Made by a program: the position numbers and the translations under genes. Shown one piece after another: positions 14,452 to 62,669 of a stretch of 64,000 bases of DNA. This DNA comes from Macrostomum lignano (Eukaryota), in the NCBI GenBank assembly GCA_002269645.1, contig NIVC01000218.1, positions 328,407-392,406 on the forward strand. Reading direction: 5' to 3'. Under the pieces are notes generated by a model, which did no database searches, had not been told where the DNA came from, and saw only the letters and a list, made by a program, of their open reading frames with translations. The first letter of the stretch is position 1, and every line of letters starts with the position of its first letter.

Positions 14452-14454
14452 TAG

Positions 14455-14535: not shown

Positions 14536-14539
<4 letters not shown>

Positions 14540-15078: not shown

Positions 15079-15233
15079 GGGGTCCGTAGCCCAGCGGTCT
15101 GGCGCGGCGCTCTGATGTGCCAGCGGCTCAGGCTCGATCCCAAGTACAGGCACATTGATTTGGGGCTAAATTGGAATCTCGGCTTGGCTCTGCTCGTGCA
15201 ATTAACGGCCTTGAAGGCCAACGATAAATAAAG
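15079..15233 (+). mobile_element. Short tRNA-derived SINE-like element in intron 1 of copy B
   Basis: Box A TAGCCCAGCGG (15087), degenerate box B GGCTCGATCCC (15131), A-rich end ataaataaag. No cloverleaf and no clear TSD. Absent in B' intron 1. Confidence 0.5.
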
Positions 15234-15794
15234 TTAGGGCCGCTGTACACTGCTGTGTGAGTGTGTCCCTGTGCGTATGACTGCGTACGCATCCTTGCGC
15301 TTGTGTGCCTGCTCAGGGGAGTCGGCGGAATTTCTATTACTAATAGTAGTCTAAAACGACAGAGAACGGCCCTCAATTTCCCACACAAGACTTGAACCTC
15401 ACGGACGTGTACAACAACCTGTGGCAAAAGGCTTGGATGTCATTCGATTGGGCAGAGCGATGGTTGAACTTAGACCAATTCGATTTTGTGCTCAAAGCAG
15501 ACGATGACACATTTGTTGTGGTGGAGAACCTCCGTCTTCTGCTAGCCCCGTTGGATCCCGGACAGCCCGTCCATCTGGGCCGGTGGTTTTTCTACGATCG
15601 CGACCCGAAGCAGAGCTACATGTCCGGCGGGGGTGGCTACGTCTTGTCCAGAGCTGCTGTCCGACTGTTTCTGGCCAGAGCCGTGCGATCAGCTTCAACA
15701 CCCAAAGAGTGCAACCTGCAGGAGCACACTGCGGAGGACTGGAAGATGGGTGAGCGGCTGCCGTGGGATTTCTGGGTGTCTTCTGAGTTCTGGG

Positions 15795-16460
15795 GTGAGT
15801 CTGGTGTGAGTCTGGGGTGAGTCTCTTGAGTCTGGTGTGAGTCTGGTGTGAGTCTGGTGTGAGTCTGGGGTGAGTCTGGTGTGTGTCTGGGGTGAGTCTG
15901 GTGTGAGTCTGGTGTGAGTCTGGTGTGAGTCTGGGGTGAGTCTGGTGTGAGTCTGGGGTGAGTCTGGTGTGTGTCTGGGGTGAGTCTGGTGTGAGTCTGG
16001 GGTGAGTCTGGGATGAGTCTGGTGTGAGTCTGGGGTGTGAGTCTGGGTGGAGTCTGGGGTGAGTCTGGGGTGAGTCTAGGGTGAGTCTGGGGTGAGTCTG
16101 GGGTGAGTCTGGGGTGAGTCTGGGGTGAGTCTGGGGTGAGTCTGGGGTGAGTCTTGTGTGAGTCTGGTGTGAGTCTGGGGTGAGTCTGGGGTGAGTCTGG
16201 GGTGAGTCTGGGGTGAGTCTGGTGTGAGTCTGGGTGGAGTCTGGTGTGAGTCTGGGGTGAGTCTGGGGTGAGTCTGGGGTGAGTCTGGGGTGAGTCTGGG
16301 GTGAGTCTGGGGTGAGTCTGGGGTGAGTCTGGGTGGAGTCTGGTGTGAGTCTGGGGTGAGTCTGGGGTGAGTCTGGGGTGAGTCTGGTGTGAGTCTGGTG
16401 TGAGTCTGGGGTGAGTCTGGGGTGAGTCTGGGGTGAGTCTGGGGTGGGTCTGGGGTGAGT
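15795..16460 (+). repeat. 10-bp satellite (gtgagtctgg) in intron 2 of copy B
   Basis: Direct reading, roughly 65 copies. Confidence 0.95.
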
Positions 16461-16780
16461 CCGTTTCTGGGTTTTTTTAATCGCGGCTCTCAGTCACTCT
16501 GTATCCGAGTGCTCGTTGACTTCTCAGTTTGTGGGGTCTCTTTTGTAGGCATCTTCAAATGATAATTTAACAATAAAACCACTTCAATCTCTACAGGCAC
16601 GTGTCTTTCAAGCCTGGGCGTGAAATTTGTAGACAGCCGAGACGTGGGTGGTTTGGACCGGTTCCACCCCATCAACGTTGAGTACATGATCGGCTGGGGG
16701 CCCGCCGAGATGCCGCAGTGGATGTGGAAATTTAATTATTATAAATTCAGGGCTGTGAGTGCCGGGGTTGGGACTGGGGC

Positions 16781-20915: not shown

Positions 20916-21124
20916 GCCAACCAAATTAGTATCGTATCTAGAAATTATGAATGATTGAGCAGGTTGCGATAGTTTAAATGTAGCAGAGTTTTTCTCAAAA
21001 CTATGTGCTTAAAATTAACGCTTTCAATTTTAAAATGCTTTACTTTCAACTAATATACGTTTGCTAATCATAAGCTTGCAGAAGGTCGCTTTCACAATCT
21101 TGACATCGGGCTAACTGGAAACGT

Positions 21125-22330
21125 CACAAACGCGAACAAAACCTTCACAAACTCGAACAAAACCTTCACAAACTCAAACAAAACCTTCACAAACTCGAAC
21201 AAAACCTTCACAAACGCAAACAAAACCTTCACAAACTCGAACAAAACCTTCACAAACTCAAACAAAACCTTCACAAACTCAAACAAAACCGTCACAAACT
21301 CGAACAAAACCGTCACAAACGCAAACAAAACCTTCACAAACTCGAACAAAACCTTCACAAACTCGAACAAAACCTTCACAAACTCAAACAAAACCTTCAC
21401 AAACTCGAACAAAACCTTCACAAACTCAAACAAAACCTTCACAAACTCAAACAAAACCGTCACAAACTCGAACAAAACCGTCACAAACGCGAACAAAACC
21501 TTCACAAACTCGAACAAAACCTTCACAAACTCGAACAAAACCTTCACAAACTCAAACAAAACCGTCACAAACTCGAACAAAACCGTCACAAACTCGAACA
21601 AAACCTTCACAAACTCAAACAAAACCGTCACAAACTCGAACAAAACCTTCACAAACTCGAACAAAACCTTCACAAACTCAAAAAAAACCTTCACAAACTC
21701 GAACAAAACCTTCACAAACTCGAACAAAACCTTCACAAACTCAAAAAAAAACCTTCACAAACTCAAACAAAACCTTCACAAACCCGAACAAAACCTTCAC
21801 AAACTCAAACAAAACCTTCACAAACCCGAACAAAACCTTCACAAACTCGAACAAACCTTCACAAACTCGAACAAAACCTTCACAAACTCAAAAAAAACCT
21901 TCACAAACTCAAACAAAACCTTCACAAACTCAAAAAAAACCTTCACAAACTCGAACAAAACCTTCACAAACTCGAACAAACCTTCACAAACTCGAACAAA
22001 ACCTTCACAAACTCAAAAAAAACCTTCACAAACTCGAACAAAACCTTCGCAAACTCAAACAAAACCTTCACAAACTCAAACAAAACCTTCACAAACTCAA
22101 AAAAAACCTTCACAAACTCGACCAAAACCTTCGCAAACTCAAACAAAACCTTCACAAACTCAAACAAAACCTTCACAAACTCAAAAAAAACCTTCACAAA
22201 CTCGAACAAAACCTTCGCAAACTCAAACAAAACCTTCACAAACTCAAACAAAACCTTCACAAACTCAAACAAAACCTTCACAAACTCGAACAAAACCTTC
22301 GCAAACTCAAACAAAACCTTCACAAACCCG
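21125..22330. repeat. 21-bp minisatellite (acaaactcgaacaaaaccttc)
   Basis: Direct reading. Confidence 0.96.
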
Positions 22331-22601
22331 AAACTTACTCGTCAAAGTTTAACTACGACGGTTGCAGATTTGCAAAATTTTCTCTTTGCAGAAAATCTGA
22401 AACTACAAAAATGGCTTGAATTTTCATGCGCGAGACGGCGGAGCTTCTGCATGTGGAGGTTGTTAAAAATTATTTTTAGCAAAAATACTGCATTAGGCAC
22501 ATGGGGAGCATTGTACAGTCCCCACGGACACCTGTGCTGTGGCACTGTACCCCCGGAGGTGGAGGATTGAACCGACAAAACTCAGACGCCCGCCCCAATG
22601 T

Positions 22602-22647
<46 letters not shown>

Positions 22648-23299
22648 TCACTTTTAAGAAAATCGAAGAAATTGAATGCGGAAATTTTAGAATTCTACTT
22701 CGCTTTAGGAATGCAAAAAATAAGAATATAATTTCAAACATTTGCTTTCTTTGCATGCAAATGTTTGCAATTATATTCTTATTTTTTGCATTCCTAAATG
22801 CGGAAAATTTTGTCGGGCAATTGAAATGCAAGATATCGCATTTCAACTTGATATGCAGTCTTTCAGGTGATCGATTATTCTTTGTGCCCAGAAAATTATA
22901 TAGAACTACTTGCATAAGGGCATAAAAATTGAGGAAATGAATTTTCCTTCAAAGTGAAAAAGCCATGAAGCAAAATCTCAAAGCTGAAATATGACGCTTC
23001 TTTTACCTTTGAATATTTTTTCCCAGTTTTTCTTCGCCTAAGCCGCCCAAGTGGCTCCTTATTAGCGGGGTACAAGGAAGTTGAGAAGACTGACAGTTGG
23101 GGGGGGGGGAGGAGCAGCCAGCTAGCGCCATTGAAGAGTGAGCACCTGTTCAATAAGTGCCAGAAAAGCGCTCCGTCCGTTGTAATTAGGAATGAGGCGC
23201 TCGTGAAATAAGGGCGCCAAGATGAGGGGCGCCAAGATGGGGGTGACAGGAAGAGGGGCGTCAGAAAGAGGGGCGCCAGGATGAGTCGCGCCATGAAAA

Positions 23300-24622
23300 G
23301 GTGACCAAAATAAGAATAGCGCCAGGAAGGGTAGCGCCAGGAAGAGCAGCGCCAGGAAGAGTAGCGCCAGGAAGGGTAGCGCCAGGAAGAGTAGCGCCAG
23401 GAAGAGTGGCGCCATGAAAAGGAGACCAAAATAAGAATAGCGCCAGGAAGGGTAGCGCCAGGAAGGGTAGCGCCAGGAAGAGTAGCGCCAGGAAGAGTAG
23501 CGCCAGGAAGAATAGCGCCTAGAAGAGTAGCGCCAGGAAGAGTGGCGCCAAGAAGAGTGGCGCCAAGAAGAGTGGTGCCAGGTAAAATAGCGCCAGGAAG
23601 AGTAGCACCAGGAAGAGTGGCGCCGGGAAGAGTAGCGCCAGGAAAAGTGGCGCCAGAAAGAGTGGCGCCAAGAAGAGTAGCGCCAGGAAGAGGGGCGCCA
23701 GGAAGAGTGGCGCCAAGAAGAGTGGCGCCAGGAAGAGTAGCGCCAAGAAGAGTAGCGCCAGGAAGAATAGCGCCAAGAAGAGTAGCGCCAGGAAGAATAG
23801 CGCCAAGAAGAGTAGCGCCAGGAAGAATAGCGCCAAGAAGAGTAGCGCCAGAAAGAATAGCGCCAAGAAGAGTAGCGCCAGGAAGAGTAGCGCCAAGAAG
23901 AGTAGCGCCAGGAAGAATAGCGCCAAGAAGAGTAGCGCCAGGAAGAATAGCGCCAAGAAGAGTAGCGCCAGGAAGAATAGCGCCAAGAAGAGTAGCGCCA
24001 GAAAGAATAGCGCCAAGAAGAGTAGCGCCAGGAAGAATAGCGCCAAGAAGAGTAGCGCCAGAAAGAATAGCGCCAAGAAGAGTAGCGCCAGGAAGAGTAG
24101 CGCCAAGAAGAGTAGCGCCAGAAAGAATAGCGCCAAGAAGAGTAGCGCCAGAAAGAATAGCGCCAAGAAGAGTAGCGCCAGGAAGAGTAGCGCCAGGAAG
24201 AGTAGCGCCAGAAAGAATAGCGCCAAGAAGAGTAGCGCCAGGAAGAGTAGCGCCAAGAAGAGTAGCGCCAGAAAGAATAGCGCCAAGAAGAGTAGCGCCA
24301 GGAAGAGTAGCGCCAGGAAGAGTAGCGCCAGAAAGAATAGCGCCAAGAAGAGTAGCGCCAGGAAGAGTAGCGCCAAGAAGAGTAGCGCCAGAAAGAATAG
24401 CGCCAAGAAGAGTAGCGCCAGGAAGAGTAGCGCCAAGAAGAGTAGCGCCAGAAAGAATAGCGCCAAGAAGAGTAGCGCCAGAAAGAATAGCGCCAAGAAG
24501 AGTAGCGCCAGGAAGAGTAGCGCCAGGAAGAGTAGCGCCAGAAAGAATAGCGCCAAGAAGAGTAGCGCCAGGAAGAGTAGCGCCAAGAAGAGTAGCGCCA
24601 GAAAGAATAGCGCCAAGAAGAG
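23300..24622. repeat. 15-bp minisatellite (agtagcgccaggaag / aatagcgccaagaag)
   Basis: Direct reading. Confidence 0.96.
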
Positions 24623-25044
24623 TGAGTAATAATTCAGATTCGTCCAGGAATCTTCACAGCCAAACGTGAGAGGAATTATAAAAAAGATTAGCTAGTCTTT
24701 GCTTCGAAATAATTCTTTAAGTTGAGGTCCCAAAGCCTCAAGAAACCTCCAGAAGTCTAAAAGCTGGTATTAATACCACTTAAGGAGATTTTAGCATTGC
24801 TCGTACAGCATGGGTCGAACAATTTTTACGGGTTATAAGAAGCCACGAATGAAAAGTTAATGTAAATATATTTATAAAATCAAGGCAGTTTGTGCTTTTA
24901 AGCTTCACAATTATTTCTACAGGAAAGCATCAAGTCAGGTAATGATTACTGTTTTCTTTCATCTGTTAATTATAGGGGATTTTATCCTGATATATTAGAT
25001 TTCTTTCGAGATACTATCCTGGTAGTTTCACATATACCAGTAGG

Positions 25045-25925
25045 TATTTTCTCAGCTAGATATTTTCTCATCTAGGTATTTTCTCATCTAGGTATTTTCC
25101 AAGCTAGGTGTCTTCTAATTTACATATGTCTTTTCTTATCTAACAATCTTCTCATCTAGGTAGGTATTTTCTCATCTAGGTATTGTCTCATCTAGGTATT
25201 TTCTCATCAAGCATTTTCTCATCAAGGTAGCTTCTCTCATCTAGGTATTTTCTGATCTAGATAGCTTCTTTCATGTAGGTATTTTCTCATTTTCGTATTT
25301 TCGTATCTAGGTATTTTCTCATCTAGGTATTGTCTCAGCTAGGTATTTTCTCAGCTAGGTATTTTCTCATCTAGGTATTGTCTCAGCTAGGTATTTTCTC
25401 ATCAAGCATTTTCTCATCAAGGTAGCTTCTCTCATCTAGGTATTTTCTGATCTAGATAGCTTCTTTCATTTAGGTATTTTCTCATTTTCGTATTTTCGTA
25501 TCTAGGTATTTTCTCATCTAGGTATTGTCTCAGCTAGGTATTTTCTCAGCTAGGTATTTTCTCATCTAGGTATTGTCTCATCTAGGTATTTTCTCATCAA
25601 GCATTTTCTCATCAAGGTAGCTTCTCTCATCTAGGTATTTTCTGATCTAGATAGCTTCTTTCATTTAGGTATTTTCTCATTTTCGTATTTTCGTATCTAG
25701 GTATTTTCTCATCTAGGTATTGTCTCAGCTAGGTATTTTCTCAGCTAGTTATTTTCTCATCTAGGTATTGTCTCAGTTAGGTATTTTCTCAGCTAGGTAC
25801 TTTCTCATCTAGGTGAGACTAGAGAACAGAAATGTGAGACTAGAGAACAGGTGCGCAGGATTAAAAACACTACAAAGAGAACAATAACCTCTGTCTCAGC
25901 TTGGTATTTTCTCATCTAGGTATTT
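25045..25925. repeat. 16-bp minisatellite (attttctcatctaggt) with a 195-bp higher-order repeat
   Basis: The variant block aagcattttctcatcaaggtagc recurs at 25209, 25404 and 25599. Confidence 0.92.
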
Positions 25926-25958
25926 TCTGCCCATCAATTCGCACAGTCCGACTGACAG

Positions 25959-28900
25959 ATGGCTGGCAGCAACAGGTTACTCTCTCTGGCAGTGGGTCTG
26001 GTTGCCGGCGCCATGGTGACGCAACTGATTCACGTAGCGAACCATTCGTTGGCAATCCACCACTTGACTGATGAACAGCGGCCAAGCGAAAAATTTGAGC
26101 AGAAACTCAAACCTGAGGCTAAGATTCCTAGTGCAGATTGTCCATCTGCGACTTCTCAGGCAACTCGACTCAATATAGTTGACCAATTGTTTAATAGAGT
26201 TAGAATTCTCTGTCTAATTATGACTCATCCGGCTAACTATGCCGAGAATGCGGTTGCCGTGAACAACACCTGGGCTAGGCGCTGCAATCGCTATGCTTTC
26301 TTTGGTAGCGCCCGGACTCGACTGAAGATTCCACTGGTCTGTGAGTTGTGCCGCCGGTAGCCCGTTGGCAAGGCGACTTGGAAGAAGAAAAATGCGCCGC
26401 AAATCTAAGAGCGGGGAGATGAAGAGTTAAGAGGAAGTGGGGAAGGGGAGGGAGATATAGGGAGAGGGGAAGAGGGGGAGAGGGGAAGAGGGGAAGAGAG
26501 GGAGAAGGGAAGAGGGGAAGAGAGAAGGGAAGAAAGGGAGAGGGGAAGAGAGAGAGGGGAAGAGAGAGAGGGAGAGAGGGGAAGAGAGGGAAAGGGGAAG
26601 AGAGAGAGAGAGAGGGGAAGAGAGAGAAGGGAAGAAAGGGAGAGGGGAAGAGAGAGAGGGGGGTGAAGAGAGGGAGAGGGGAAGAGAGGGAGAGGGGAAG
26701 AGAGGGAGAGGGGAAGAGGGGAAGAGAGGGAGAGGGGAAGAGGGGAAGAGAGGGAGAGGGGAAGAAAGGGAGAGGGGAAGAGAGGGAGAGGGGAAGAGAG
26801 GGAGAAGGGAAGAGAGGGAGAGGGGAAGAGAGGGAGAGGGGAAAAGAGGGAGAGGGAAAAAGGGAGAACGGAAGAAAGGAAGTGGGGAAGAGAGGGAGAA
26901 GGGAAGAGAGGAAGAGGGGAAGAGAGGGAGAGGGGAAGAGAGGGAGAAGGGAAGAGAGGGAGAGGGGGAAGAAAGGGAGATTGGTAACGGCGAAGAAAGA
27001 ACCTTAGAAATTGGATCTCCATAAGGAGTTTCTCAGGTGCATTATATTGAAGTCTTCATTATCTGCTGATATGTATCGTGATTGTGGTAATGCTAATTAC
27101 GTATCGTAATTAGCATAACAAAGCCAAAAATATTACCGGTTGCCCATTAACGCCCTGAACATCAAGGAGAAGCGCAGAAATCTGTGGAAGAAGACTTGGA
27201 TGTCATTCCAATACGCAGAAGCGCACTTCAACTTTGACAACTTCGACTTCATACTAAAAGCAGACGATGACAGTTATTTTGTGATGGAGAACATGCGCTA
27301 CCTTCTTCTGTCGCAGGATCCCGATCAGCCCAGCCTGCTTGGCCGGGTGTTCAAGCCGCGCAGCTGGTTAAAGCAGAAGTACACCTCTGGTGGCGCCGGC
27401 TATCTGCTGTCACGGGGAGCGGCGAAAATTTTTGCCAGCAAAGCAGTGAAAAGCGGAGGCACTAAACCTAAGGCCTGCGATTTGAGGTCCAGCATGCCCG
27501 AGGATGTCAAAATGGGTGAGCGGCTCGAAGTTCCCGTTGTTCCACTGGGCTGCGACATCATGAGGGCTTAAGTTAGAGTCCGTTGGCACCTGACAATGGT
27601 TTGATAATCTCTTGTCCCTACTCCTCTCTTCTATCCACTCTCTCTGCTTAATCCATTCTTCTCTTTCCCTTTCTACCTTTTTCATCGCTATTCTCACTCC
27701 TCTCCTCTCTCTTCTCTCTTCTCTCCTCTCTTTTCTCTACTCCCTCTTCTCAACTCTCTCTTCTCTCCCCTCTCCTCTCTCCTCTCTTCTCTCCCCTCTC
27801 CTCTCACTTCTCTCCTCTGTCTCCTCTCCTCTCTCTCTTCTCTCCTCTCTCTTATCTCCTCTCTCCTCTCTCTTATCTCACCTCTCCTCTCTCCTCTCTC
27901 CTCTCTCTTATCTTATCTCTCCTCTCTCTTCTCTCCTCTCCCTTCTCTCCTCTCTCTTCTCTCCTCTCTCTTCTCTCCTCTCACCTCTCTCCTCTCTCCT
28001 CTCTCTTATCTTATCTCTCCTCTCTCCTCTCTCCTCTCTCCTCTCTCTTTCTCTCCTCTCTTCTCTCCCCTCTCCTCTCTTCTCTCTTCTCTCCCCTCTC
28101 CTCTCTCATCCCACCTCTCCTCTCTCCTCTCTCCTCTCTCTTATCTTATCTCTCCTCTCTCCTCTCTCCCTTCTCCTCTCTCATCTCTCCTGTCTGCTCT
28201 CTTCTCTCCTCTTTCCACTCTCCTCTTTCCCTCCCATCTCCTCTACTCTATTTTCTCTCTTCTTTCCCCCTCCTCTCCCTCCTTCTTATCTTATCACTTT
28301 ACTCCCTTCCATCTCCTGTATGCAAACATGTACTCTTTTTCCCTATTCCCCCATCTTTCCCTATGCTGTCCCCCCCCCAACCTTCTCCACCGCTATCTCC
28401 CGATCCTGACTTGGCTCCGCAGGCCAGTGCCTGGCAAAGCTCGGCGTTCGAATATTGGACACTGAGGACAGGCAGGGCCTGACGCGCTTCCATCCGCTGC
28501 CTCTGCAGTACACTCTCGGCCTGACCTCGGCTCCTGATTGGCTGATCGACTACAGCTATCATAAGTTTCGGGCCGTGAGTAGCCTACTGTTTCAAACAAA
28601 TTCTGGGACTTGAATTATTTCGGACCTAATGAAACTAATGTCTTGTGGAATTTTGGTCCTGATTTAGATCCTATAAATGAAATTTAGGTCCTGATGAAAT
28701 TAATGTCTTGTCAAATTTAGGTCCTGATTTAGATCCTATAACGTGACATTTAGGTCTTAATGAAATTTTCATTTCCTAATGAAATTTAGGTCCGAATGAA
28801 ATTTAGGTCCGAATGAAATTTAGGTCTAAATGAAATTTAGGTCCAAATGAAATTTAGGTCCGAATGAAATTTAAATCTAAATGAAATTTAGGTCTAAATG

Positions 28901-29212
28901 AAATTTAGGTCCAAATGAAATTTAGGTCCGAATGAAATCCTCCAATTCTTTACTAACAGCTGAGGGAGCCTCAAGCAGCCTTAGTAGGCAACTCATGCAC
29001 ATGATCCACGCCCCCCTTCCTTCACTCGTTTGCAGTGCGTCAAAGGCTGCGCCAGCCCTGTGTCAGTGTCGGTTCACTACGTCTCACCCGACGAGATGTA
29101 CCAGTATGAGTTTCTGCTGTACACACTGCGACCCATAGGAACTGATCCCATTGCTGAGCACACTAGACTTCTTCTAGAGGCTATGAAGAGGCCATTGGGA
29201 GAAGGAGAATAA
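25959..29212 (+). CDS. C1GALT1: C1GALT1-like copy C (divergent paralog); 4 exons, exon-2 acceptor non-canonical
   Basis: Exons 25959-26340, ~27153-27515, 28423-28574, 29036-29212. TM anchor, [61 protein letters not shown]. The homologous acceptor position reads ..ttaacg| instead of ..ag|. Confidence 0.8.
26420..26980. repeat. Purine-rich (GA) low-complexity tract, intron 1 of C
   Basis: Direct reading. Confidence 0.93.
27690..28280. repeat. Pyrimidine-rich (CT) low-complexity tract, intron 2 of C
   Basis: Direct reading. Confidence 0.93.
28675..28945. repeat. 17-bp minisatellite (atgaaatttaggtccga), intron 3 of C
   Basis: Direct reading. Confidence 0.9.
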
Positions 29213-29509
29213 GTCTATAGCAACTTTTCACTAAACTGTTTCGTCATCAATATCCAACACGAAGGTTCATGAACTCTAATCAACGATAACAATTAAATCA
29301 TGGCATGCTACTTATAGTAGCAGCCTATATGCATATAGCTCGTATTGGTGTTTTTGATTTAATAAAAACTGATCATTTTCATTGGGCTATTTAGGTTACC
29401 ACCCGATGATGTTAGATCTATTAAAATAAGTAAATAAATTTTGGCCTTCCTGAGACTATTAATTCTGCTTTTTTAATTGAACCAGACAGGCCATTCTCTG
29501 CACCTCTTT

Positions 29510-29513
29510 GTAT

Positions 29514-29590
<77 letters not shown>

Positions 29591-29591
29591 A

Positions 29592-29633
<42 letters not shown>

Positions 29634-29634
29634 A

Positions 29635-29683
<49 letters not shown>

Positions 29684-29692
29684 GGTCTGTCC

Positions 29693-29748
<56 letters not shown>

Positions 29749-29757
29749 GGTCTGTCC

Positions 29758-29851
<94 letters not shown>

Positions 29852-29880
29852 GTGCCTGTCTGTCTGTCTGTCTGTCTGTT
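29510..29880. repeat. (TGTC)n microsatellite
   Basis: Direct reading. Confidence 0.97.
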
Positions 29881-30302
29881 TTCTGATTGTGAGAGGGTGA
29901 GAGTTGGAGAGTGAAAGTGGTGCAATACAGGCAAAGCAGCAAAAGTATACTGCAGTGAGAGCATAACAGTGAGAGGTAGCGAACACCGCAAGCCGCCTGA
30001 CCCCCAGTAACATGAGCTAGACAACCGCTCCTAGAAACTTGGTCATACACTTTTTGACTTGCATAAGGATTGTATAACCGCCGCTAGAGTTTAAAGAAGC
30101 TAGAAAAAGAACTGAAATGAGAAAGGAAGGCAAAACTTGAGAATATGAAACCTTTCATTAATCCAGATAGCCCTACAATTCCTGCAACAGCCCGCCATCC
30201 ACCTCAACCTCCACATTCCTCAAAAGTAGACGCCATGTGGTTGCTGCACACAGATCCTCATTTCAAGCCATACCAACAGATCCCATTGCTGCAACAACCG
30301 CT

Positions 30303-32668
30303 ATGCTGATTACCACAGCGACTCTCAATAGAAAAATTGTGGCTTTTTCCCTGGGCGCCATGCTTGGCGCTCTGGCCACTCAAATTGTGATGATGGCTAC
30401 TGGAAGCCGCGAGCCAATAGAGGACTATCACCATGGCAACCAGGCATCGGCGTACTCATTGGCACCGGATCCAGTTTATCAACTGTCGACCCCAACGCCG
30501 ACAGAAGCAGCGCCTGAAGCTATTGAAGAGATTGGTAGGAAGGTTCGTCTGCTCTGCCTGATCATGACTCATCCGGGAAATTATAAAACCAAAGCTATTG
30601 CCACGAACAACACCTGGGCCAACAGGTGTGATAAATACATTTTTGTTGGCAGCAATGCGACCCAGCTCAATCTGCCATTGATGCGTGAGTTCTTCTATGA
30701 AGTTTCGATTGCATTTCGCTTGCTTACTTGACTATCGTATTTTCGATACATATCGGCAACATAAACAGGTGTGTACTTAAATGTAGAATCTTTCATTTTG
30801 CATGCCTCTCTTACAACTCCGACACTCCACATCTCCGACATTTCATATCACCGACACTTCATATCTCCGACACTTCATATCACCGACACTCCACATCTCC
30901 GACACTCCATATCACCGACACTTCATATCACCGACACTTCATATCACCGACACTCCATATCACCGACACTTCATATCTCCGACACTTCATATCTCCGACA
31001 CTTCATATCTCCGACACTCCATATCGCTGACACTTCATATCTCCGCACTTCAGTTTAATAGCTTCATTCACAACTCCGACACTTCATATCTCCGTCAGGG
31101 TTAAGGGTTTAGCTTACGTGAGATATAAAGCACCCCTGCGTACGTATCCTCGCTCAATGTTGCTCAGGGTAGTCGGCGGAATGGGCGGTAATGCCTCTCG
31201 CCGTTTGTATGACACAGCTAGCCCTCCTGCCTCTAATAAAAAAGCGCTCCCAACCGCTCCCAACAAGACTTGAACCTCACGGACGTGTACAACAACCTGT
31301 GGCAGAAGGCTTGGATGTCATTCGATTGGGCTGAGCGATGGTTGAACATAGACCAATTCGATTTTGTGCTCAAAGCAGACGATGACACATTTGTTGTGGT
31401 GGAGAACCTCCGTCTTCTGCTAGCCCAGTTGGATCCCGGACAGCCCGTCCATCTGGGCCGGTGGTTTTTCTACGATCGCGACCCGAAGCAGAGCTACATG
31501 TCCGGCGGGGGTGGCTACGTCTTGTCCAGAGCTGCTGTCCGACTGTTTCTGGCCAGAGCCGTGCGATCAGCTTCAACACCCAAAGAGTGCGACCTGCAGG
31601 AGCACACTGCGGAGGACTGGAAGATGGGTGAGCGGCTGTGACGGGATCTCCGAGTGTGTTTCTCAGCTGTGAGTCTGCTGTGGGTCTGGTGTGAGTCTGG
31701 TGTGAGTCTCTTGAGTCTGGAGTGAGTCTCTTGAGTCTGGAGTGAGTCTCTTGAGTCTGGAGTGAGTCTCTTGAGTCTGGAGTGAGTCTCTTGAGTCTGG
31801 AGTGAGTCTCTTGAGTCTGGAGTGAGTCTCTTGAGTCTGGAGTGAGTCTCTTGAGTCTGGAGTGAGTCTCTTGAGTCTGGGGTGAGTCTCTTGAGTCTGG
31901 AGTGAGTCTCTTGAGTCTGGGGTGAGTCTGGTGTGAGTCTGGGGTGAGTCTCTTGAGTCTGGAGTGAGTCTCTTGAGTCTGGTGTGAGTCTCTTGAGTCT
32001 GGAGTGAGTCTCTTGAGTCTGGTGTGAGTCTCTTGAGTCTGGAGTGAGTCTTTTGAGTCTGGTGTGAGTCTGGTGTGAGTCTGGTGTGAGTCTGGTGTGA
32101 GTCTGGGGTGAGTCTGGTGTGAGTCTGGTGTGAGTCTGGTGTGAGTCTGGTGTGAGTCTGGTGTGAGTCTGGTGTGAGTCTGGGGTGAGTCTGGTGTGAG
32201 TCTGGTGTGAGTCTGGTGTGAGTCTGGTGTGAGTCTGGTGTGAGTCTGGGGTGAGTCTGGGGTGAGTCTGGGGTGAGTCTGGTGTGAGTCTGGTGTGAGT
32301 CTGTCTCTGGGTGAGTTTTGTAATCGTGTCTCTTTGCCATAAAGTATCCAGGTTGACTGTGACTTCTTGACTCATCAGGTCTCTTATGTATAGGCATCTG
32401 CAGACATTGATTCAACAATAAAACCACTTCAATCTCTACAGGCACGTGTCTTTCAAGTCTGGGAGTGAAATTTGTAGACAGCCGAGACGTGGGGGGTCTG
32501 GACCGGTTCCACCCCATCAACGTCGAGTACATGATCGGCTGGGGGCCCGCCGAGATGCCGCCATGGATGTGGAAAATTAATTATTATAAATTCAGGGCTG
32601 TGAGTGCCGGGGTCGAAACTGAAACAAACAGACAGACAGACAATAAGACAGAAGGACATACAGACAGG

Positions 32669-37560: not shown

Positions 37561-38229
37561 AATTATTTAATCTCCTTTCCTAATATTTTCCCTTATTTTT
37601 ATTCTTTCATTTATTCCCTCCCCAAAGAGGGTCACAGGATTGTTGCTGCTATGCCTCTCGCGCATTCACCAACGGACAGGGCTGAGCGAGCTCTGCAACA
37701 GGGGCAGACCCGGTGAGGAATTGCAAGCAGCGCAGCCAACCGACCCTTGACCCACCTGTCAGTCAAGTATCCACCCACCGCCCCCGCGGCCTCCTATCTC
37801 TCCTACTTCTCTCCTTACCGCACGAAACCTTCGCCTAAACAGTCGAATTAAGAATTTCCCAACTTTTTTTGCGCAACTGGCCTCCCTCTACCGTAGTATC
37901 TTCACCCATCCTATACCGCTTAAAATCGTAAAGGAACGGCATTGCCTAGATGAGTCAGCCTGCCTGGCAAGCACCTGGACTGTGGGGGGGGGGGGCTAAC
38001 CTCTACCGACTTTTAGCTGAATACTATTATAAATCAAACTTGCAGAATGTATCTAGGCTAACTGTGTATAATACAAGGTTTGAAAATTAATCTTTTACTA
38101 AGTCTGGGAGACTGAAACTTTCTGCTTTGAATCAATTTGATTCATGACTTCCTTATGCAGGCATGACGTACACACCGGTAGAATCTAAGGTAGGGGTGCG
38201 ATGGACACTGCATGATTTTCCAGACGGAA

Positions 38230-39218
<989 letters not shown>

Positions 39219-39236
39219 CCCTGCCTCACCCCTCAG

Positions 39237-53335
<14,099 letters not shown>

Positions 53336-55597: not shown

Positions 55598-55734
55598 ATA
55601 GAATGCGTTTTTATTGGCCTTCACGATTGGTTTTTCTCATTTTTTCAAAGAATTACAAATACTCGAGGTGTGCAATTCTGAGATTCTATTTGTACAATTC
55701 TGTACAAATTACAAATATCATACGGAAGCAACAG

Positions 55735-57085
55735 TACAAACACAGAAGAAACAGTACAGACACAGAAGAAACAGTAGCTCGTACAGACACAGAAGAAACA
55801 GTACAAGACACAGAAGAACCATTACAGACACAGAAGAAACAGTACAGACACTGAAGAAACAGTACAGACACTGAAGAAACAGTACAGACAAAGAAGAAAC
55901 AGTACAGACACAGAAGAAACAGTACAAGACACAGAAGAAACAGTACAGACACAGAAGAAACAGTACAAGACACAGAAGAACCATTACAGACACAGAAGAA
56001 ACAGTACAGACACTGAAGAAACAGTACAGACACAGAAGAACCCTTACAGACACAGAAGAAACAGTACAGACACAGAAGAACCATTACAGACACAGAAGAA
56101 ACAGTACAGACACAGAAGAACCAGTATAGACACAGAAGAAACAGTACAGACACAGAAGAAACAGTACAGACACAGAAGAACCATTACAGACACAGAAGAA
56201 ACAGTGCAGACACAGAAGAACCAGTATAGACACAGAAGAAACAGTACAGACACAGAAGAACCATTACAGACACAGAAGAAACAGTACAGACACAGAAGAA
56301 CCAGTATAGACACAGAAGAAACAGTACAGACACGGAAGAAACAGTACAGACACAGAAGAAACAGTACAGACACAGAAGAACCAATACAGACACAGAAGAA
56401 CCATTACAGACACAGAAGAACCCTTACAGACACAGAAGAAACAGTACAGACACAGAAGAACCAATACAGACACAGAAGAACCATTACAGACACAGAAGAA
56501 CCCTTACAGACACAGAAGAAACAGTACAGACACAGAAGAACCATTACAGACACAGAAGAAACAGTGCAGACACAGAAGAACCAGTATAGACACAGAAGAA
56601 ACAGTACAGACACAGAAGAAACAGTACAGACACAGAAGAAACAGTACAGACACAGAAGAAACAGTATACAAGACACAGAAGAACCATTACAGACACAGAA
56701 GAACCATTACAGACACAGAAGAACCATTACAGACACAGAAGAACCCTTACAGACACAGAAGAAACAGTACAGACACAGAAGAACCAGTATAGACACAGAA
56801 GAAACAGTACAGACACAGAAGAAACAGTACAGACACAGAAGAACCAGTATACAAGACACAGAAGAACCATTACAGACACAGAAGAAACAGTACAGACACA
56901 GAAGAACCAGTATAGACACAGAAGAAACAGTACAGACACAGAAGAAACAGTACAGACACAGAAGAACCAGTATACAAGACACAGAAGAACCATTACAGAC
57001 ACAGAAGAAACAGTACAGACACAGAAGAAACAGTACAGACACAGAAGAACCAGTACATACACAGAAGAACCAATACATACACAGA
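55735..57085. repeat. 20-bp minisatellite (acagacacagaagaaacagt) in the 5'-UTR intron of P1
   Basis: Direct reading. Confidence 0.96.
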
Positions 57086-57169
57086 AGTAGATTCAGAAAA
57101 GCATTTAGCTGTAAATAAATCTGATGAATATTCTAGGCTTTTAATGGTTTAACTACCAAGTTTCAGAGA

Positions 57170-57469
57170 ATGTCGCCATCAATCAACAAATTGGTGTACA
57201 GCCTGCTGCTTCTGGGCCTCCTGTGCACCGCCACAACAGTCTCAGCTGACTGCACCAGCAAATGCTTTACTAGCTCCGATTGTCCAGAGTTTTCGGACGA
57301 TGGCGCTTTAAAACTGGCCAAATCGTGCTGGCGTTGGTATTATTCTTGCAAAACTATTGAAGAACAGCCGGTTGACCGTTCCAGCTGTGCTGAATGCGTG
57401 CAGTGCGCCTACACAGCCTGCAATCGGGGAAATGCTCCGCAAAAAATTATCAGCGACTACTGCAAATAA
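57170..57469 (+). CDS. Secreted 10-Cys peptide P1 (99 aa), family not recognised
   Basis: Hydrophobic signal peptide ending ..TTVSA; Cys framework conserved with two paralogs; single coding exon preceded by an acceptor. Confidence 0.88.
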   Translation: MSPSINKLVYSLLLLGLLCTATTVSADCTSKCFTSSDCPEFSDDGALKLAKSCWRWYYSCKTIEEQPVDRSSCAECVQCAYTACNRGNAPQKIISDYCK

Positions 57470-58661
57470 ATATGCAATTGCTAAAATATGTAATTACTAC
57501 AAACAGGCAAAATAGAACGCTTTTTGACGTCACATTGATCGAAAACATGTGTGCATGTAAATGCACATGATGTATATCAATAGAGATAAAGTGAACTTTT
57601 TGAAAGTTGGAATCATACAACGGTGTTAGTGTTTTGACCTTTAATGTCGTATGTTACAAAATATGACGGCTGATTCAAATAAATATTCACGAAGTGGAGA
57701 CGGTGTTGCAATTTTAAATTCTTCTGCCAATGTATTTGTGTGCTTTATAATTAAAAAATTACATTCGCAACGCAATTCGAAAAGTAATACTAGAATGACA
57801 TACTCGTATTTGCAGCCTGAAGCAATGTGTGATGCGCTTTAAAGTGCACCATTTTAAACTATGTTTTTAGCATTGACAGCACGTAGCTCGTAGCTAATCA
57901 CTGAAAACAATGAAGCAAACTAATAAGGTTTATGTTTTTATTTACTGCAGTAGCCAATACGTCATATCATCAATATAAATCGTGCACAAAATAGCGGATA
58001 AACAGTATACGAATTCTGTTGTACGCGATGCTATTTTGATACTACGAGTATTTTATCATTTCCGTTTTAGCAGCGCTACTCCAAGTTTGAATGCTGTAAG
58101 CATTATGGAAGCATTATTGACCGCATTAAGCTTAATCCTATGTACATATTGACATGACACTGTTACACTTCTCTCTGATAGATTTAAACCAACGGTTGCA
58201 AGAAGGAGCCGATTTTGGTTTACTGGAAACTGGTTCAGACCTGCTTGCAGCACAGTTTGTTAAAAAATGACTGAATTGAAGGAGAGTGATCTTACTGAGA
58301 GAAATGAGAAACACAAAAATGCTTTTTAATAGCTAGGATCATATATCTTACATCTTTTCAAATAGAAAGTCATTTCCAATGGTAACAAATGCATCATACG
58401 ACCGTAGAACACTTGTCGAACTCAGTGTCGCTGGGAATATTCTGGGAGTTAAAAATATTATTCTATGTTTTCGCTAGTATATTGAGAACTGTAACTCTAT
58501 TTCTGATCACTAAGTTTGCTGCGATTTGAATTCCTCCCTAGCAGAAGTATAGCTCTTATCAGCAGCTGTCGAAAAATGCACTGCTCACGCCCACTGGCCG
58601 TATAGCTTAGAAACTGCGATTCTGGTCTGATCTGCCAATTCAAGTGGATTTAAATTACGAC

Positions 58662-58774
58662 TATTTAAAAGCCAAATTCTTACTGTAATTAGGAGCGCGT
58701 AAGTCACAATAGTGAAAAAAGACGTTACTTTTTGAGGTTGCTGCAGTATCGAGTCGAACTGAAGTTTGGTAAGC
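58662..58774 (+). promoter_or_regulatory. TATA-like box and non-coding exon 1 of peptide gene P2
   Basis: TATTTAAAA at 58662; donor gaagtttg|GTAAGC at 58768/58769; 124-nt intron ending tttcag at 58892. Confidence 0.7.
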
Positions 58775-58896
58775 GCACTATTGATGAATCAGCTGTTTCG
58801 TGGTGTCCATGTCAACCGTAGTCGAAAGTTATAAGTAAAGTTAAAGTATTATAAACAGCACGTGTCTCTAAAAATACAATCTTTCATTTCAGAACA

Positions 58897-59196
58897 ATGT
58901 CGCCTTCCAGTTTCAAACTGGTGTCAAGCCTGCTGTTTCTCGGCCTCCTGTGCGTGTCAGTGTCCAAAGTCACTGCGAAATGTTCCAGCAAAATCTACAC
59001 AGCCGACGATTGCCCGGAGTTTTCTAACGAAGGCGCCGAATATCTGGCCTACATGTGCAAAATTTGGAGATACCGCTGCCTAAGGAGAGGGAAGTACGTG
59101 CTCGATGCCAGTTGCTCCGACTGCGTCCAGAGCGCCTACACAGCCTGCGATCGGGGCCAGGCGCCGGACTCCAGCAGATTCGAATACTGCTGGTAA
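58897..59196 (+). CDS. Secreted 8-Cys peptide P2 (99 aa), paralog of P1/P3
   Basis: Signal peptide ..SKVTA; CPEFS..GA..LA..C..W.Y.C...C.DCVQ.AY.AC.RG.AP.....EYCW. Confidence 0.88.
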   Translation: MSPSSFKLVSSLLFLGLLCVSVSKVTAKCSSKIYTADDCPEFSNEGAEYLAYMCKIWRYRCLRRGKYVLDASCSDCVQSAYTACDRGQAPDSSRFEYCW

Positions 59197-59679
59197 ACGC
59201 GCACTTGTATTTGATGAAATCCGCGTTAAGCTTATGAAACTGTAAACTGTATTTGGACTGACGGTGTGGGTTAACAATACTAATATTTGCGTGAATTAAA
59301 ACAATACCGAAGCAGTTGGTTTGAAGACAAGAAAATAGAAAATCTTTTGGAAAAAAAGAACTTTTTTGCTGAACACACATCTACGATTTATGTAGCTCGT
59401 ACGTTCAATTATTTACACTAATTCATCACTTGGATATTTCCCGAAGAATGCTTACAGATTTTTTCATTTTTAATTATTATTACATTTTAATTAGCAAGTG
59501 GTAGGACTCAATGGACTTATATTTATTTTATGTAGAAATATTCTTAGCAGAAGACTCTTCCACTACGAGCTAAATAATTCTTCAGAGAATCATGGGAGCA
59601 TACAAAAAAGAAAGATAAAAATGCAACCATAAAATGCGCTATCGCTGAGGTCCTAAACACTACAACTGAGTCACAGGAC

Positions 59680-60110
59680 TTTTCTCAGGACAGCCAACAG
59701 GCAGTCGACGAAAAGCCGAGTGCGCGCCTGTCCTCGCCGCGGTAGGCTGCCTGCAGCTTCAGCAGCAGCACCTGCAGCAGTATGACTGTCAGATGAAGTC
59801 GCTTGGACGCACCAGTCTGGTGCAGTGAGAGTGCCGCGTTGGTGACTCGCTTGTCGCCGATCTTGAAGGCGACGCACAGCAGCATTCGGCTGATTGAGCG
59901 AATCTTTAAACATTCAAGCCTCTCTACTCGTATAGCAGCTTGGACACAAGCCACCGTGTTCGCTCATGCAGCATTACTGTATTGGCATTCAAGACTCACT
60001 TTGATTGCACCAACGAATGTTTTCAGCCATGAATTTCGATTTGCTTATAGTGCATCCTCCTAACACCCATGGCGTAAGTCTGACTGTGCAAGATGAATTA
60101 ACGCCGTTGC
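59680..60110 (-). mobile_element. Decayed RTE-clade LINE 3' fragment (tentative)
   Basis: Minus-strand frames give ..AVRRLQ.. and RRGQARTRLFVDCLL, resembling the post-RT C-terminal segment of RTE ORFs; many frameshifts. Confidence 0.4.
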
Positions 60111-60433
60111 TTGGTTTAGGTCGGTGGGTGATTCGACTCAGACTCTTAGCTTAAGCAACACCTGAGCATTCTGCACCGCCCTCGACGCACCACTCGAAGG
60201 TACGAGTGACGAAATGAGTTGACCAAAAATCCTTCGGAGTTTGGTCTAAGGAGATTCAACGTCATTTTATCATGTTTAGTGATATCATGTGATATCATAA
60301 TATCATATCATTTATCGTGTTTAGTGACCATGACCAGGTGACTTCAAATCATTAATAAATTTAAGCAAACGCGTTCTAATTTTATGAAAATGTACAGCGA
60401 AATAAAATACAGTTGATAGTTCATATGTTGCAA

Positions 60434-60457
60434 CAAGGACTACTTATGTCGTCCTTG
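60434..60457. mobile_element. 24-bp fused-TIR remnant with 8-bp TSD (putative P-type excision footprint)
   Basis: tgttgcaa|caaggactacttatgtcgtccttg|tgttgcaa; the ends match the termini of the 49401-49977 element. Confidence 0.75.
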
Positions 60458-60473
60458 TGTTGCAAGTTTCAGC

Positions 60474-60520
60474 CAAGGACTACTTAACAACTGTTGTTAA
60501 CAGTTGTTAAGTAGTCCTTG
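60474..60520. mobile_element. 47-bp TIR-only remnant with 8-bp TSD
   Basis: gtttcagc|caaggactacttaacaactgtt-gtt-aacagttgttaagtagtccttg|gtttcagc; perfect 22-bp inverted arms. Confidence 0.8.
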
Positions 60521-60953
60521 GTTTCAGCCTAATCCAACAAAATTTTTACTTTTGGCAAGCAATAGTCCCGACACTTTTGCAGAATCCCTCATCAGCTGCT
60601 ATCACTTCTCACACTTTTGACTGGTCCAGTCACAGTCATTTTGACATCTCTGACATCACTGACTATCCATATACTAAAAATCAAATCTAATCATAGAGTA
60701 AAAAAACTAAGCTTCAAAACTAATCTACCGTGAGTCAAAGGCAATTAATTCTTTTATTAAAAAAGAAACTAGAGATCGAACTTTGGAGTAATATTACATT
60801 CACCAAATAAAGTAGTTTCACAAAAGTTGACTAAATTGTTTGGCACTCACCTTCAGCAAGACGTAGCTCTAGTCAACAGCTGTCAATTTCGGAGCGGATT
60901 GCATTACTGAAAAATGTTAGTAAATCCAGTTAATCGAATTGGCTCAAATTTGC

Positions 60954-61064
60954 TATTTAAGAGCGCAATAGCAGACTGCAAGTTTGAGTACGTGCGGTAG
61001 TGGCTTTAAGATTTAGAGTGCTCGCATCAGCGCATCAGTGCCATCCATCCGAAGTTTGGTAAGT
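60954..61064 (+). promoter_or_regulatory. TATA-like box and non-coding exon 1 of peptide gene P3
   Basis: TATTTAAGAG at 60954; donor gaagtttg|GTAAGT at 61058/61059; acceptor ttacag at 61839. Confidence 0.7.
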
Positions 61065-61094
61065 GCGTTGCATACATGAGCTGTGGGGATGCTA

Positions 61095-61752
61095 CGTCAG
61101 GATAGACCACACCTGGATGGACCGCATCAGGATCGACTGCATCAGGATCGACCACATCAGGATAGACTGCATCAGAATAGATCACACCAGGGTAGACCGC
61201 TTCAAAATAGACACATCAGGATAGACCACATCAGGATAGAACACATCAGGATAGACCACATCAGGATAGACCACATCAGGATAGAACACATCAGGATAGA
61301 CCACATCAGGATAGACCACATCAGGATAGACCACATCAGACTAGACCACATCAGGATAGAACACATCAGACTAGACCACATCAGGATAGACCACATCAGA
61401 CTAGACCACATCAGGATAGAACACATCAGACTAGACCACATCAGGATAGAACACATCAGGATAGACCACATCAGAAAGGACCGCATCAAGATATAGACCA
61501 CATCAGGATAGACCACATCAGGATAGACCACATCAGGATAGACCACATCAGGATAGACCACATCAGGATAGACCACATCAGGATAGACCACATCAGGATA
61601 GACCACATCAGGATAGACCACATCAGGATAGACCACATCAGGATAGACCACATCAGGATAGACCACATCAGACTAGACCACATCAGGATAGAACACATAA
61701 GGATAGATCACATCAGAAAGGATCACATCAGGATAGACCACATCAGGATAGA
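61095..61752. repeat. 15-bp minisatellite (catcaggatagacca) in the 5'-UTR intron of P3
   Basis: Direct reading. Confidence 0.96.
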
Positions 61753-61842
61753 AGCAGCAGACGCTTGAAAGACTATTGTCTATGTGTTGTCTATGTATGT
61801 TCTGTTCCAAGTATTTTTTGCAAAATATTACCGTTACAGAAA

Positions 61843-62148
61843 ATGTTGGGGCTATCTAATTGCAAACTGCTGTCCAGCCTGCTAGTTCTAATTTGGTTAG
61901 TCTGCGCTGCTACCTACGTCGGCGCGAACTGCTCAAGCAAGTGCTTCTCGCGATCCGATTGTCCCGATCGGTCGGACGAAGGCGCCGAAAAGCTGGCCAA
62001 ATCGTGCAGGACTTGGAGATACCGATGCCTAATTAATGAGGGGGAGTACGTTTCGGATTCTGCGTGCTCGGATTGCGTCCAGTGCGCCTACGCAGCCTGC
62101 GGCCGGGGAACGGCTCCGGACTCGAGTAGATACGAGTACTGCTGGTAG
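61843..62148 (+). CDS. Secreted 10-Cys peptide P3 (101 aa), paralog of P1/P2
   Basis: True ATG at 61843 (3 nt after the acceptor), not 61765; signal peptide ..TYVGA; same Cys framework. Confidence 0.88.
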   Translation: MLGLSNCKLLSSLLVLIWLVCAATYVGANCSSKCFSRSDCPDRSDEGAEKLAKSCRTWRYRCLINEGEYVSDSACSDCVQCAYAACGRGTAPDSSRYEYCW

Positions 62149-62669
62149 TCGGACGCATGGACGTTAAATATCGTTATTGGAAGGCAGTTTTGATAAGATT
62201 GTACGCGCCTATGGTGTCAGTTAATAACTTATTCATACTACATATATCGTGCAACATGCTGGCGTCCCCTGACGTCAGATTGCTGAACAGGATATTTGCT
62301 ACAACACGACCATCAGAAAATAAATCACTAAAATAGTTGGAACAAGGAATTGAAAACAATTGATAACAGTTAGCGTTGCGATTGTGTCATAAAGTACGAG
62401 CATTCGACTGTTTTTTGTTGTAAATAACTCAAGAAAGCTTGAAAAAAAGTGTAGTTGGTGGCTTCCGATCTAGGCTACTGGTAGATTAATTAATTTTAAG
62501 TGAATTATTTGTAATTCTTGGCTTCAACCGCCAGTTTTCCTGTTATCCTCCCTACTAATCCTAATATAATCGATAAAAAACGAAGACAGGAATCCCAAAA
62601 TAATTAATTTGTTCAAACAAAGACGTCACAATCAATAAAATAGTTAAAGTTTAATCGAGGCACCGTCGT

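Follow-up and report, generated by a model that had tools for sequence, protein, structure and literature searches.

A candidate orphan family of tandemly arrayed, putatively secreted cysteine-rich mini-proteins in Macrostomum lignano

The DNA considered here is a window of 64,000 nucleotides (nt) from contig NIVC01000218.1 of the Macrostomum lignano assembly GCA_002269645.1 (positions 328,407 to 392,406 of the forward strand), and its subject is a set of three small genes, P1, P2 and P3, situated between window positions 57,170 and 62,148. On balance, and with moderate confidence, these are read as members of a tandem orphan family that encodes secreted, disulfide-bonded three-helix mini-proteins acting as extracellular binding modules or ligands. 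The region would then hold the opening three genes of a taxonomically restricted array of five, P1 to P5, all on one strand.

In the proposed mechanism, each gene would contribute a single-exon coding sequence (CDS) for a precursor of ~90-101 amino acids (aa). The signal peptide would direct the chain into the endoplasmic reticulum and be cleaved after a small-x-small site, leaving a domain of 66-73 aa that may fold into three helices: A, which is long; B, which runs antiparallel to A and bears CxxCxx(C/S)AYxAC; and a short one at the C-terminus. This bundle would be locked by four invariant disulfides, while an optional fifth could join the third cysteine of CxxCxxC to an N-terminal cysteine whose site differs between P1/P3 and P4/P5; in P2, both would-be partners are gone. 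The predicted product is a secreted mini-protein of 7-8 kDa, resistant to proteases and oxidation, which would most likely serve outside the cell, in the secretion of a gland or epithelium, as a stable ligand or binding module. Paralogue-specific partners might be engaged through the variable N-terminal segment, the loop between helices A and B, and the C-terminal loop.

The gene array and its conservation

The genes and their predicted parts are listed below. P4 and P5, which are more divergent, lie past the window end on the same strand, and are present on all three contigs that were compared; their positions are given as window equivalents together with those at locus L003.

57170 to 57469, forward strand: P1, single-exon CDS of 99 aa, from the listing of open reading frames (ORFs)
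57170 to 57247, forward strand: predicted P1 signal peptide, called by rule
57248 to 57466, forward strand: P1 mature domain, 73 aa with 10 cysteines
58897 to 59196, forward strand: P2, single-exon CDS of 99 aa with a mature chain of 72 aa and 8 cysteines, from the ORF listing and alignment
61843 to 62148, forward strand: P3, single-exon CDS of 101 aa from the ATG at 61843, from the ORF listing
61927 to 62145, forward strand: P3 mature domain, 73 aa with 10 cysteines
~64654 to 64935 (L003 15758 to 16039), same strand as P1-P3: P4, 93 aa
~68696 to 68968 (L003 19800 to 20072), same strand as P1-P3: P5, 90 aa

An earlier description of this DNA, the sequence-only reading, had proposed three same-strand ORFs encoding ~100-aa precursors with a signal peptide and a ~73-aa mature domain. 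The ORF listing agrees with the placement, and the precursors of 99-101 aa with mature chains of 72-73 aa agree with the architecture. Every motif it had named (CP(E/D)xSxxGAxxLA, WxY, AYxACxRGxAP and YC(W/K)) is found in P1-P3, and the charge contrast that it drew between an acidic loop (IEEQ) and a basic one (LRRGK) is correct. The framework of ten cysteines that it ascribed to all three holds for P1 and P3 and breaks down in P2, where Ile stands at Cys2 and Ser at Cys8. Its count of three was cut short by the window edge, as the family has five members. A 127-aa ORF that opens at a TTG at 61765 is only a mechanical extension of P3.

P1, P2 and P3 share 53-60% identity in full-length protein alignments. 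P4 and P5 are 26-37% identical to them over aligned stretches and ~45-50% identical to each other. At the DNA level, P1-P3 can be aligned in their coding regions only, with 200 nt upstream and 300 nt downstream being unrelated; the similarity is therefore due neither to a recent segmental copy nor to chance. A tblastn search with all family members against the whole window disclosed no other family copies or pseudogenes.

The locus is also found, as homeologous or haplotype copies at ~92-96% identity (BLAST, indels included), on two further contigs, NIVC01000363.1 and NIVC01001750.1. Across the three contigs all 15 ORFs of the five genes are intact, that of P3 on each contig included, and not one cysteine changes. 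The P2 protein is identical on the three contigs, with 2 synonymous differences in its gene, and the P1 protein is identical at loci L002 and L003, a 97% allele being PAA64442.1 (BOX15_Mlig022385g1). Substitutions between contigs amount to 0.75-1.4% in the CDSs versus 1.8-3.2% in the non-satellite flanks (Fisher p = 6e-5 and 0.0017), and indels are absent from the CDSs whereas 62-145 positions are gapped in the flanks. The ratio of nonsynonymous to synonymous substitution rates (dN/dS) is 0-0.55 between homeologues, where changes are few (Nei-Gojobori), and 0.34-0.49 between paralogues. Since the paralogue dS runs from 0.85 to saturation, the duplications are old. Purifying selection is seen on reading frames and cysteines alike, so that its absence from the cysteines, which the sequence-only reading would have counted against its family, is not observed: between contigs the cysteines are invariant, and dN/dS is below 1. 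Nothing in the paralogue ratios points to positive selection acting gene-wide.

Four of the five genes (P1, P2, P4 and P5) are already recorded in GenBank as 'hypothetical proteins' (e.g. BOX15_Mlig022385g1, Mlig003226g3, Mlig003746g1), and P2 is a called gene in GCA_002269645.1. The description of the family as unrecognised is thus apt for its function and kinship; it does not extend to the records themselves, given the GenBank models for four of five members and the ShKT names that UniProt attaches to two. The Mlig_3_7 annotation was built on transcript evidence only (StringTie/TACO/TBONE on RNA sequencing), with novel models of low RPKM (reads per kilobase per million) dropped (PMC5730564). 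The presence of P1, P2, P4 and P5 models in a transcript-only annotation is therefore indirect evidence of their expression.

Candidate transcription and processing signals accompany the three window genes as follows.

57161 to 57166, forward strand: TTTCAG acceptor-like motif, ending 3 nt before the P1 ATG
57465 to 57470, forward strand: AATAAA, candidate poly(A) signal, overlapping the P1 stop codon
58887 to 58892, forward strand: TTTCAG acceptor-like motif, ending 4 nt before the P2 ATG
59295 to 59300, forward strand: ATTAAA, candidate poly(A) signal, ~100 nt past the P2 stop
61834 to 61839, forward strand: TTACAG acceptor-like motif, ending 3 nt before the P3 ATG
62319 to 62324, forward strand: AATAAA, candidate poly(A) signal, ~170 nt past the P3 stop

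The consensus [T/C]TNCAG is the top signal at M. lignano spliced leader (SL) trans-splice acceptors (PMC8629364). Its background frequency is 0.003-0.005 per nt, and the sequence around the three motifs is otherwise unalignable among P1-P3. Upstream of P4 and P5 there is only a CAG, located 1 nt and 7 nt before the respective ATG. The TTTCAG and TTACAG motifs are putative acceptors for SL trans-splicing or for an intron of the 5' untranslated region. The published SL itself ends in ATG (PMC8629364); splicing at the putative acceptors would place this ATG in frame with the ATG of the gene itself in P1 and P3, where the spacer is 3 nt, and the two frames would disagree in P2, P4 and P5, with spacers of 4, 1 and 7 nt. 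Intergenic distances in the array are 1.4-3.8 kb. Because these gaps exceed the repeat-adjusted 1-kb criterion used for M. lignano operons (PMC8629364), an operon is not favoured, and separate promoters are likelier than one polycistron.

The neighbouring gene upstream of the array, on the same strand and extending to ~53335 (L003 1-4439), has several exons and encodes a PH-domain protein of ~890 aa; the introns of this gene presumably hold many of the satellite arrays of the window. The DNA (1-57100 and 61097-61752) is dominated by over 40 different micro- and minisatellite arrays, among them a 23-mer repeated 289 times at 3839-10479 and a 44-mer repeated 29 times at 42807-44076. Many long 'ORFs', such as 56204-57118 and 38163-40094, are translated satellite arrays and not genes. 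One block of satellites recurs in order, ~2319-16461 against ~18606-32303. It comprises a 29-mer TGGATTGCTAATCTAGCCAAGATGCATAA, a 16-mer GTCACCCTCTAGATCT, a 23-mer with AGATTGGCGCC and a 20/21-mer with TCACAAACTCGAA, together with a GGCGCCAGGAAGAG-like 15/30-mer, a TCTG array and an 11-mer TGAGTCTGG, which suggests a segmental duplication of ~14-16 kb. Two arrays border the family. The one at 55725-57087 has 67 copies of a 20-bp unit and stops 83 nt short of the P1 ATG; the one at 61097-61752 has 44 copies of a 15-bp unit and stops 91 nt short of the P3 ATG. BLAST alignments to the homeologous contigs are fragmented across both. The 15-bp array may explain why P3 is missing from the repeat-filtered GenBank annotation.

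Predicted precursor, cysteine framework and fold

By rule, P1-P5 appear to carry a classical signal peptide. Each has a hydrophobic core within residues 9-22 (Kyte-Doolittle 10-mer maxima of 2.6-3.65, and 2.6-3.2 in P1-P3) and, before the first cysteine, a cleavage site of the form V/A-x-A/G, which in P1-P3 is V-x-A. The mature chains measure 66-73 aa and 7.3-8.3 kDa, with pI values of 4.9-7.6 and net charges at pH 7 of -1.3 to +0.7, and the family C-termini are YCK, YCW, YCY and YCYY. The sequences of P1-P5 contain no dibasic sites outside disulfide loops and no Gly amidation signal; the sole RR, in the LRRGK of P2, falls within a disulfide-bounded loop. A classical neuropeptide is therefore not indicated. 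None of P1-P5 has the strong net positive charge expected of a cationic antimicrobial peptide or a basic channel toxin, and their charge and pI speak against a cationic antimicrobial peptide.

Eight cysteines are invariant among the five paralogues, namely C2, C12, C27, C34, C47, C50, C58 and C72 in mature P1 numbering. C53, the third cysteine of CxxCxxC, pairs in occurrence with C6 in P1 and P3, while in P4 and P5 its equivalent is accompanied by an N-terminal cysteine placed differently (CPxxC); in P2, Cys2 and Cys8 were lost together, leaving eight cysteines. Since the ninth and tenth cysteines vary as a unit, they may form an optional fifth bond between helix B and the N-terminal arm, and the pattern as a whole would accommodate four conserved disulfides and one optional. 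The N-terminal spacing in P4 and P5 is C-x6-C-x3-C in place of C-x3-C-x5-C, and the loop between helices A and B is 6-7 residues shorter in P4 and P5. The stretch C-[AS]-[DEN]-C-[VL]-x-[CS]-A-[YF]-x-A-C-x-x-G, which makes up helix B with its C-cap, is the best conserved. Variation is greatest in the two terminal segments, the N-terminal arm and the C-terminal loop, and in the A-B loop with its 6-7-residue indel and acidic versus basic character.

The AlphaFold2 model of the P1 mature domain has a pLDDT of 95.5 and a pTM of 0.83, with helices at residues 17-37, 44-57 and 65-71. A full-length model of a P4 allele shows three helices as in P1, the mature part having a pLDDT of ~88-91; the alignments supplied for modelling held 3 and 5 sequences. 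The family fold is thus confidently predicted as a compact three-helix bundle, in line with the helical, disulfide-stapled fold at which the sequence-only reading had guessed. When the P1 and P4 models were compared with 350,542 PDB chains by Foldseek, the best E value was 3.8, and one model compared with BFVD gave 0.99 at best, so that neither database held a structural neighbor with E < 0.99. TM-scores among the PDB and BFVD matches reached ~0.55. On these models, the fold is possibly new.

Searches for relatives point in the same direction. A word-indexed profile search of 5.8 billion proteins returned M. lignano proteins only, and an exhaustive HMMER search of 1.84 billion representatives found no relatives outside M. 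lignano. One extra HMMER match, P0005 (254 aa, E 1.6e-5), was set aside as spurious, being repetitive with five 'QCITWYFRCL'-like words. A scan of metagenome contigs gave 49 pattern matches with 0 confirmed. The Pfam scan of P1-P5 and fragments assigned no family, its sub-threshold noise consisting of Dicty_CAD (E 0.054) and a signal-peptide match to Nodulin_late (E 0.016), and the profile search of PDB sequences gave no match apart from weak leucine-rich repeat (LRR) noise. A 4Fe-4S ferredoxin-like CxxCxxCxxxCP was also considered and rejected, because its x3 gap is x4 here, the third cysteine is missing from P2 and the chain is predicted to be secreted. The claim that the peptides match no characterized family thus withstands HMMER against Pfam, PDB sequences and Foldseek, and P1-P5 appear to be a genuine orphan family of predicted secreted all-alpha mini-proteins, found in M. 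lignano only among the databases searched.

Possible roles and rival explanations

A chain that is secreted, stable, non-cationic and unprocessed, with a conserved core, variable loops and five retained paralogues, would most likely have an extracellular binding or ligand role. The sequence-only reading had taken the divergence between cysteines as typical of pheromone, toxin, seminal or antimicrobial families. The paralogue dN/dS of 0.34-0.49, with no sign of gene-wide positive selection, does not bear this out; taken with the charge, the missing sign of positive selection tells mildly against a classical antimicrobial or toxin role and against a fast-evolving seminal one.

Several points weigh against the proposed orphan family of binding mini-proteins. 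The signal peptides were called by rule (n-region, h-region and small residues at -3/-1), the disulfide map was drawn from paralogue patterns and helix register only, and the structural models rest on the small alignments noted above. P3 lies outside the called genes of the GenBank assembly, its only database record being a 99% match in UniParc/MetaClust (UPI0007A35A05). UniRef and UniProt automatically name the P1 allele A0A267EUM9 and a P4 allele 'ShKT domain-containing protein', a name assumed to come from PROSITE profile PS51670. Another reading of the acceptor-like motif is a TCAG-like initiator marking where transcription begins. The homology searches covered protein databases and metagenome contigs, and a three-sequence profile missed even P4 and P5 at database scale, so that remote homologues may exist in other flatworms. 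Gene and accession identifiers were not found in searchable paper text, nor in the supplements of PMC5816591, PMC5730564, PMC5946080, PMC7336406 and PMC12896417, and family peptide words are absent from that of the prostate and seminal-fluid screen PMC5977470; the results for PMC7336406 and PMC5977470 are weak negatives given uncertain identifier systems and file completeness.

Among the alternatives, the family may consist of reproductive secretions (seminal-fluid or prostate, female-tract, cement-gland or eggshell) that mediate post-mating interactions. This is unlikely, though the proteins suit it in being small, predicted to be secreted, lineage-restricted and tandem, with a moderately elevated dN/dS of 0.34-0.49. 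An in situ screen in M. lignano described 76 prostate-limited transcripts, with an ORF predicted in 65 and a signal peptide in 38 of those 65 (PMC5977470). On this view, the family would be akin to the many orphan, prostate-limited secreted transcripts of the species. However, the family peptide words do not occur in the supplements of that screen, nor the gene identifiers in the 3-million-character supplements of a study of reproduction-related genes (PMC7336406), both being weak negatives. The dN/dS is also below 1, and five old paralogues (dS at least 0.85) have been stably kept, as opposed to the rapid turnover of seminal proteins.

A more specific proposal, which we hold to be an outside chance, is that the family represents an undescribed all-alpha fold with 4-5 disulfides, confined to macrostomids, in which the paralogues are distinct extracellular signals with receptors of their own and specificity is tuned by the fifth disulfide and the A-B loop. 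By analogy with the helical pheromones of Euplotes and Aplysia, such ligands could act between conspecifics, in mating or in chemical communication.

Defence or offence effectors (antimicrobial, anti-predator or prey toxin) released from epidermal, rhabdite or pharyngeal glands are a distinctly unlikely alternative. Invertebrate toxins and host-defence peptides usually take this form, with disulfide-rich secreted mini-proteins encoded in tandem, and the loops between cysteines do vary in charge. The net charges of -1.3 to +0.7 and pI values of 4.9-7.6 are nevertheless unlike those of cationic antimicrobials or basic channel blockers, an amphipathic cationic helix is lacking, and there is no likeness to toxin families in Pfam or PDB. 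M. lignano grazes on diatoms and is not known to have a venom apparatus.

Turning to the database label, P1-P5 could be divergent ShKT (ShK-toxin-like/SXC) proteins, with Cys38-Cys79 of P1 as the core and extra N- and C-terminal disulfides, in which case they might be channel-blocking or protease-associated domains. Little probability is given to this. In its favour are the automatic UniProt names for the P1 and P4 copies, and cysteine spacings in P1 (C-x14-C-x6-C-x12-C-x2-C-x2-C) and P4 (C-x9-C-x6-C-x6-C-x2-C-x2-C) that loosely resemble the ShKT pattern C-x(5-9)-C-x(4-8)-C-x(8-14)-C-x3-C-x2-C. However, P5 does not carry the label, and hmmscan with P1-P5, their mature domains and the Cys38-Cys79 fragment gave no match to Pfam ShK (PF01549) at E <= 10. 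The family profile misses the ShKT chains present in PDB (1roo, 2n6b, 7od2, 8sed, 2mcr, 6buc), and hhalign of the family against ShK, whose sequence was verified as 1ROO, returned a probability of 0.1%. No ShKT entry appears among the Foldseek matches of the P1 and P4 models to PDB at E <= 10, although Foldseek is weak on domains of ~35 aa.

The cysteines themselves also fit the ShKT assignment poorly. P2 has Ser at the would-be Cys6 and keeps the would-be Cys1, its co-lost cysteine lying outside the putative core. The ShKT connectivity of C1-C6, C2-C4 and C3-C5 is indirectly disfavoured as well: if the predicted antiparallel A/B hairpin is right, C2-C4 and C3-C5 could not both form across it (residue-number sums of 74 and 84). 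The only spacing-compatible mapping spans 42 aa in P1 with a C4-C5 gap of x2 rather than x3, so the ShKT arrangement of six invariant cysteines in ~35-40 aa with a terminal C-x3-C-x2-C was not found, and the family is acidic to neutral without a Lys-Tyr dyad segment. The mismatch to ShK that the sequence-only reading had asserted is borne out by Pfam, the PDB profile, hhalign and Foldseek. Despite the UniProt name, membership among ShKT-domain proteins is not supported by sequence or models, and the label most likely reflects a borderline match to the profile, to which the cysteines gave rise.

The weakest alternative, that P1-P3 are chance ORFs or decaying pseudogenes in repeat-rich DNA, is highly improbable and effectively refuted already: satellite arrays dominate the window and yield many spurious ORFs, and P3 is unannotated in GenBank, but all 15 ORFs are intact with invariant cysteines, CDS divergence is less than half that of the flanks with zero indels, dN/dS is below 1, the paralogues are alignable in coding DNA only, transcript-based gene models exist, and the predicted folded domain is very confident.

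If the model of an orphan three-helix family holds, it would provide a new helical scaffold, rich in disulfides, that has no relative either solved or recognizable, and a fifth disulfide that is present, relocated or absent among paralogues would amount to a natural 'experiment' on the evolution of disulfide frameworks. The automatic ShKT label is also flagged as probably misleading. Lineage-restricted, tandem families of secreted cysteine-rich proteins occur in nearly every invertebrate genome, and in that company the present family is not yet remarkable. Since RNA interference, in situ hybridisation and transgenesis are routine in M. lignano, its function could be determined quickly.

Comparison with known systems

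The ShKT/SXC domains (PF01549, PS51670; ShK toxin 1ROO) resemble P1-P5 in being small, secreted and rich in disulfides, with a run of six cysteines that ends in closely spaced ones. The terminal spacing is C-x2-C-x2-C in this family versus C-x3-C-x2-C in ShKT. The predicted domains are also larger, with 66-73 aa, 8-10 cysteines and long helices compared with ~35-40 aa, and acidic to neutral where ShKT is basic.

The CHH/ITP/MIH neurohormones, together with the derived HAND toxins and latrodectins, are all-alpha proteins with a mature chain of ~72 aa and multiple disulfides. They share with P1-P5 a layout in which the mature chain directly follows the signal peptide. In contrast, the CHH framework has 6 cysteines, C-x16-C-x2-C-x12-C-x3-C-x8-C, and this family has no Pfam Crust_neurohorm match, amidation, precursor-related peptide or structural match. 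The 8-kDa antigen/Antigen B (HLBP) proteins of cestodes are another flatworm-restricted set of tandem families encoding secreted helical proteins of ~8 kDa. The cestode proteins differ in being essentially cysteine-free lipid binders encoded by two-exon genes, and a sequence relationship to P1-P5 was not detected in the protein searches.

A local likeness to F-box/LRR proteins is also seen. The segment C-P-E-F-S-D-D-G-A-L-K-L-A-K-S-C at 57281-57331 (P1 residues 38-54), with equivalents in P2 and P3, mimics an LRR_CC unit: C-x-x-I-[ST]-D-x-G-L-x-x-L-A-x-x-C in the repeat versus C-P-x-x-S-D-x-G-A-x-x-L-A-x-x-C in the family. FBXL17 (8uah/6w66), the sole PDB sequence match (E 6.5e-4 and 0.065), was rejected as a sum of sub-threshold repeat matches. 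Unlike those proteins, the family is predicted to be secreted and disulfide-bonded, and it has a single unit with no LRR solenoid. Convergence on a helix-capping motif probably accounts for the resemblance.

An analogy, and no more than that, can be drawn with water-borne helical pheromones. Er-1 and Er-23 of Euplotes (three- to five-helix) and attractin of Aplysia are secreted all-alpha bundles of 4-8 kDa with 3-5 disulfides. They show no likeness to P1-P5 in sequence, cysteine framework or Foldseek comparison. The parallel is instead one of organization: in each case a lineage-restricted set of small secreted proteins would display its diversity, among paralogues or alleles, in the stretches between the cysteines.

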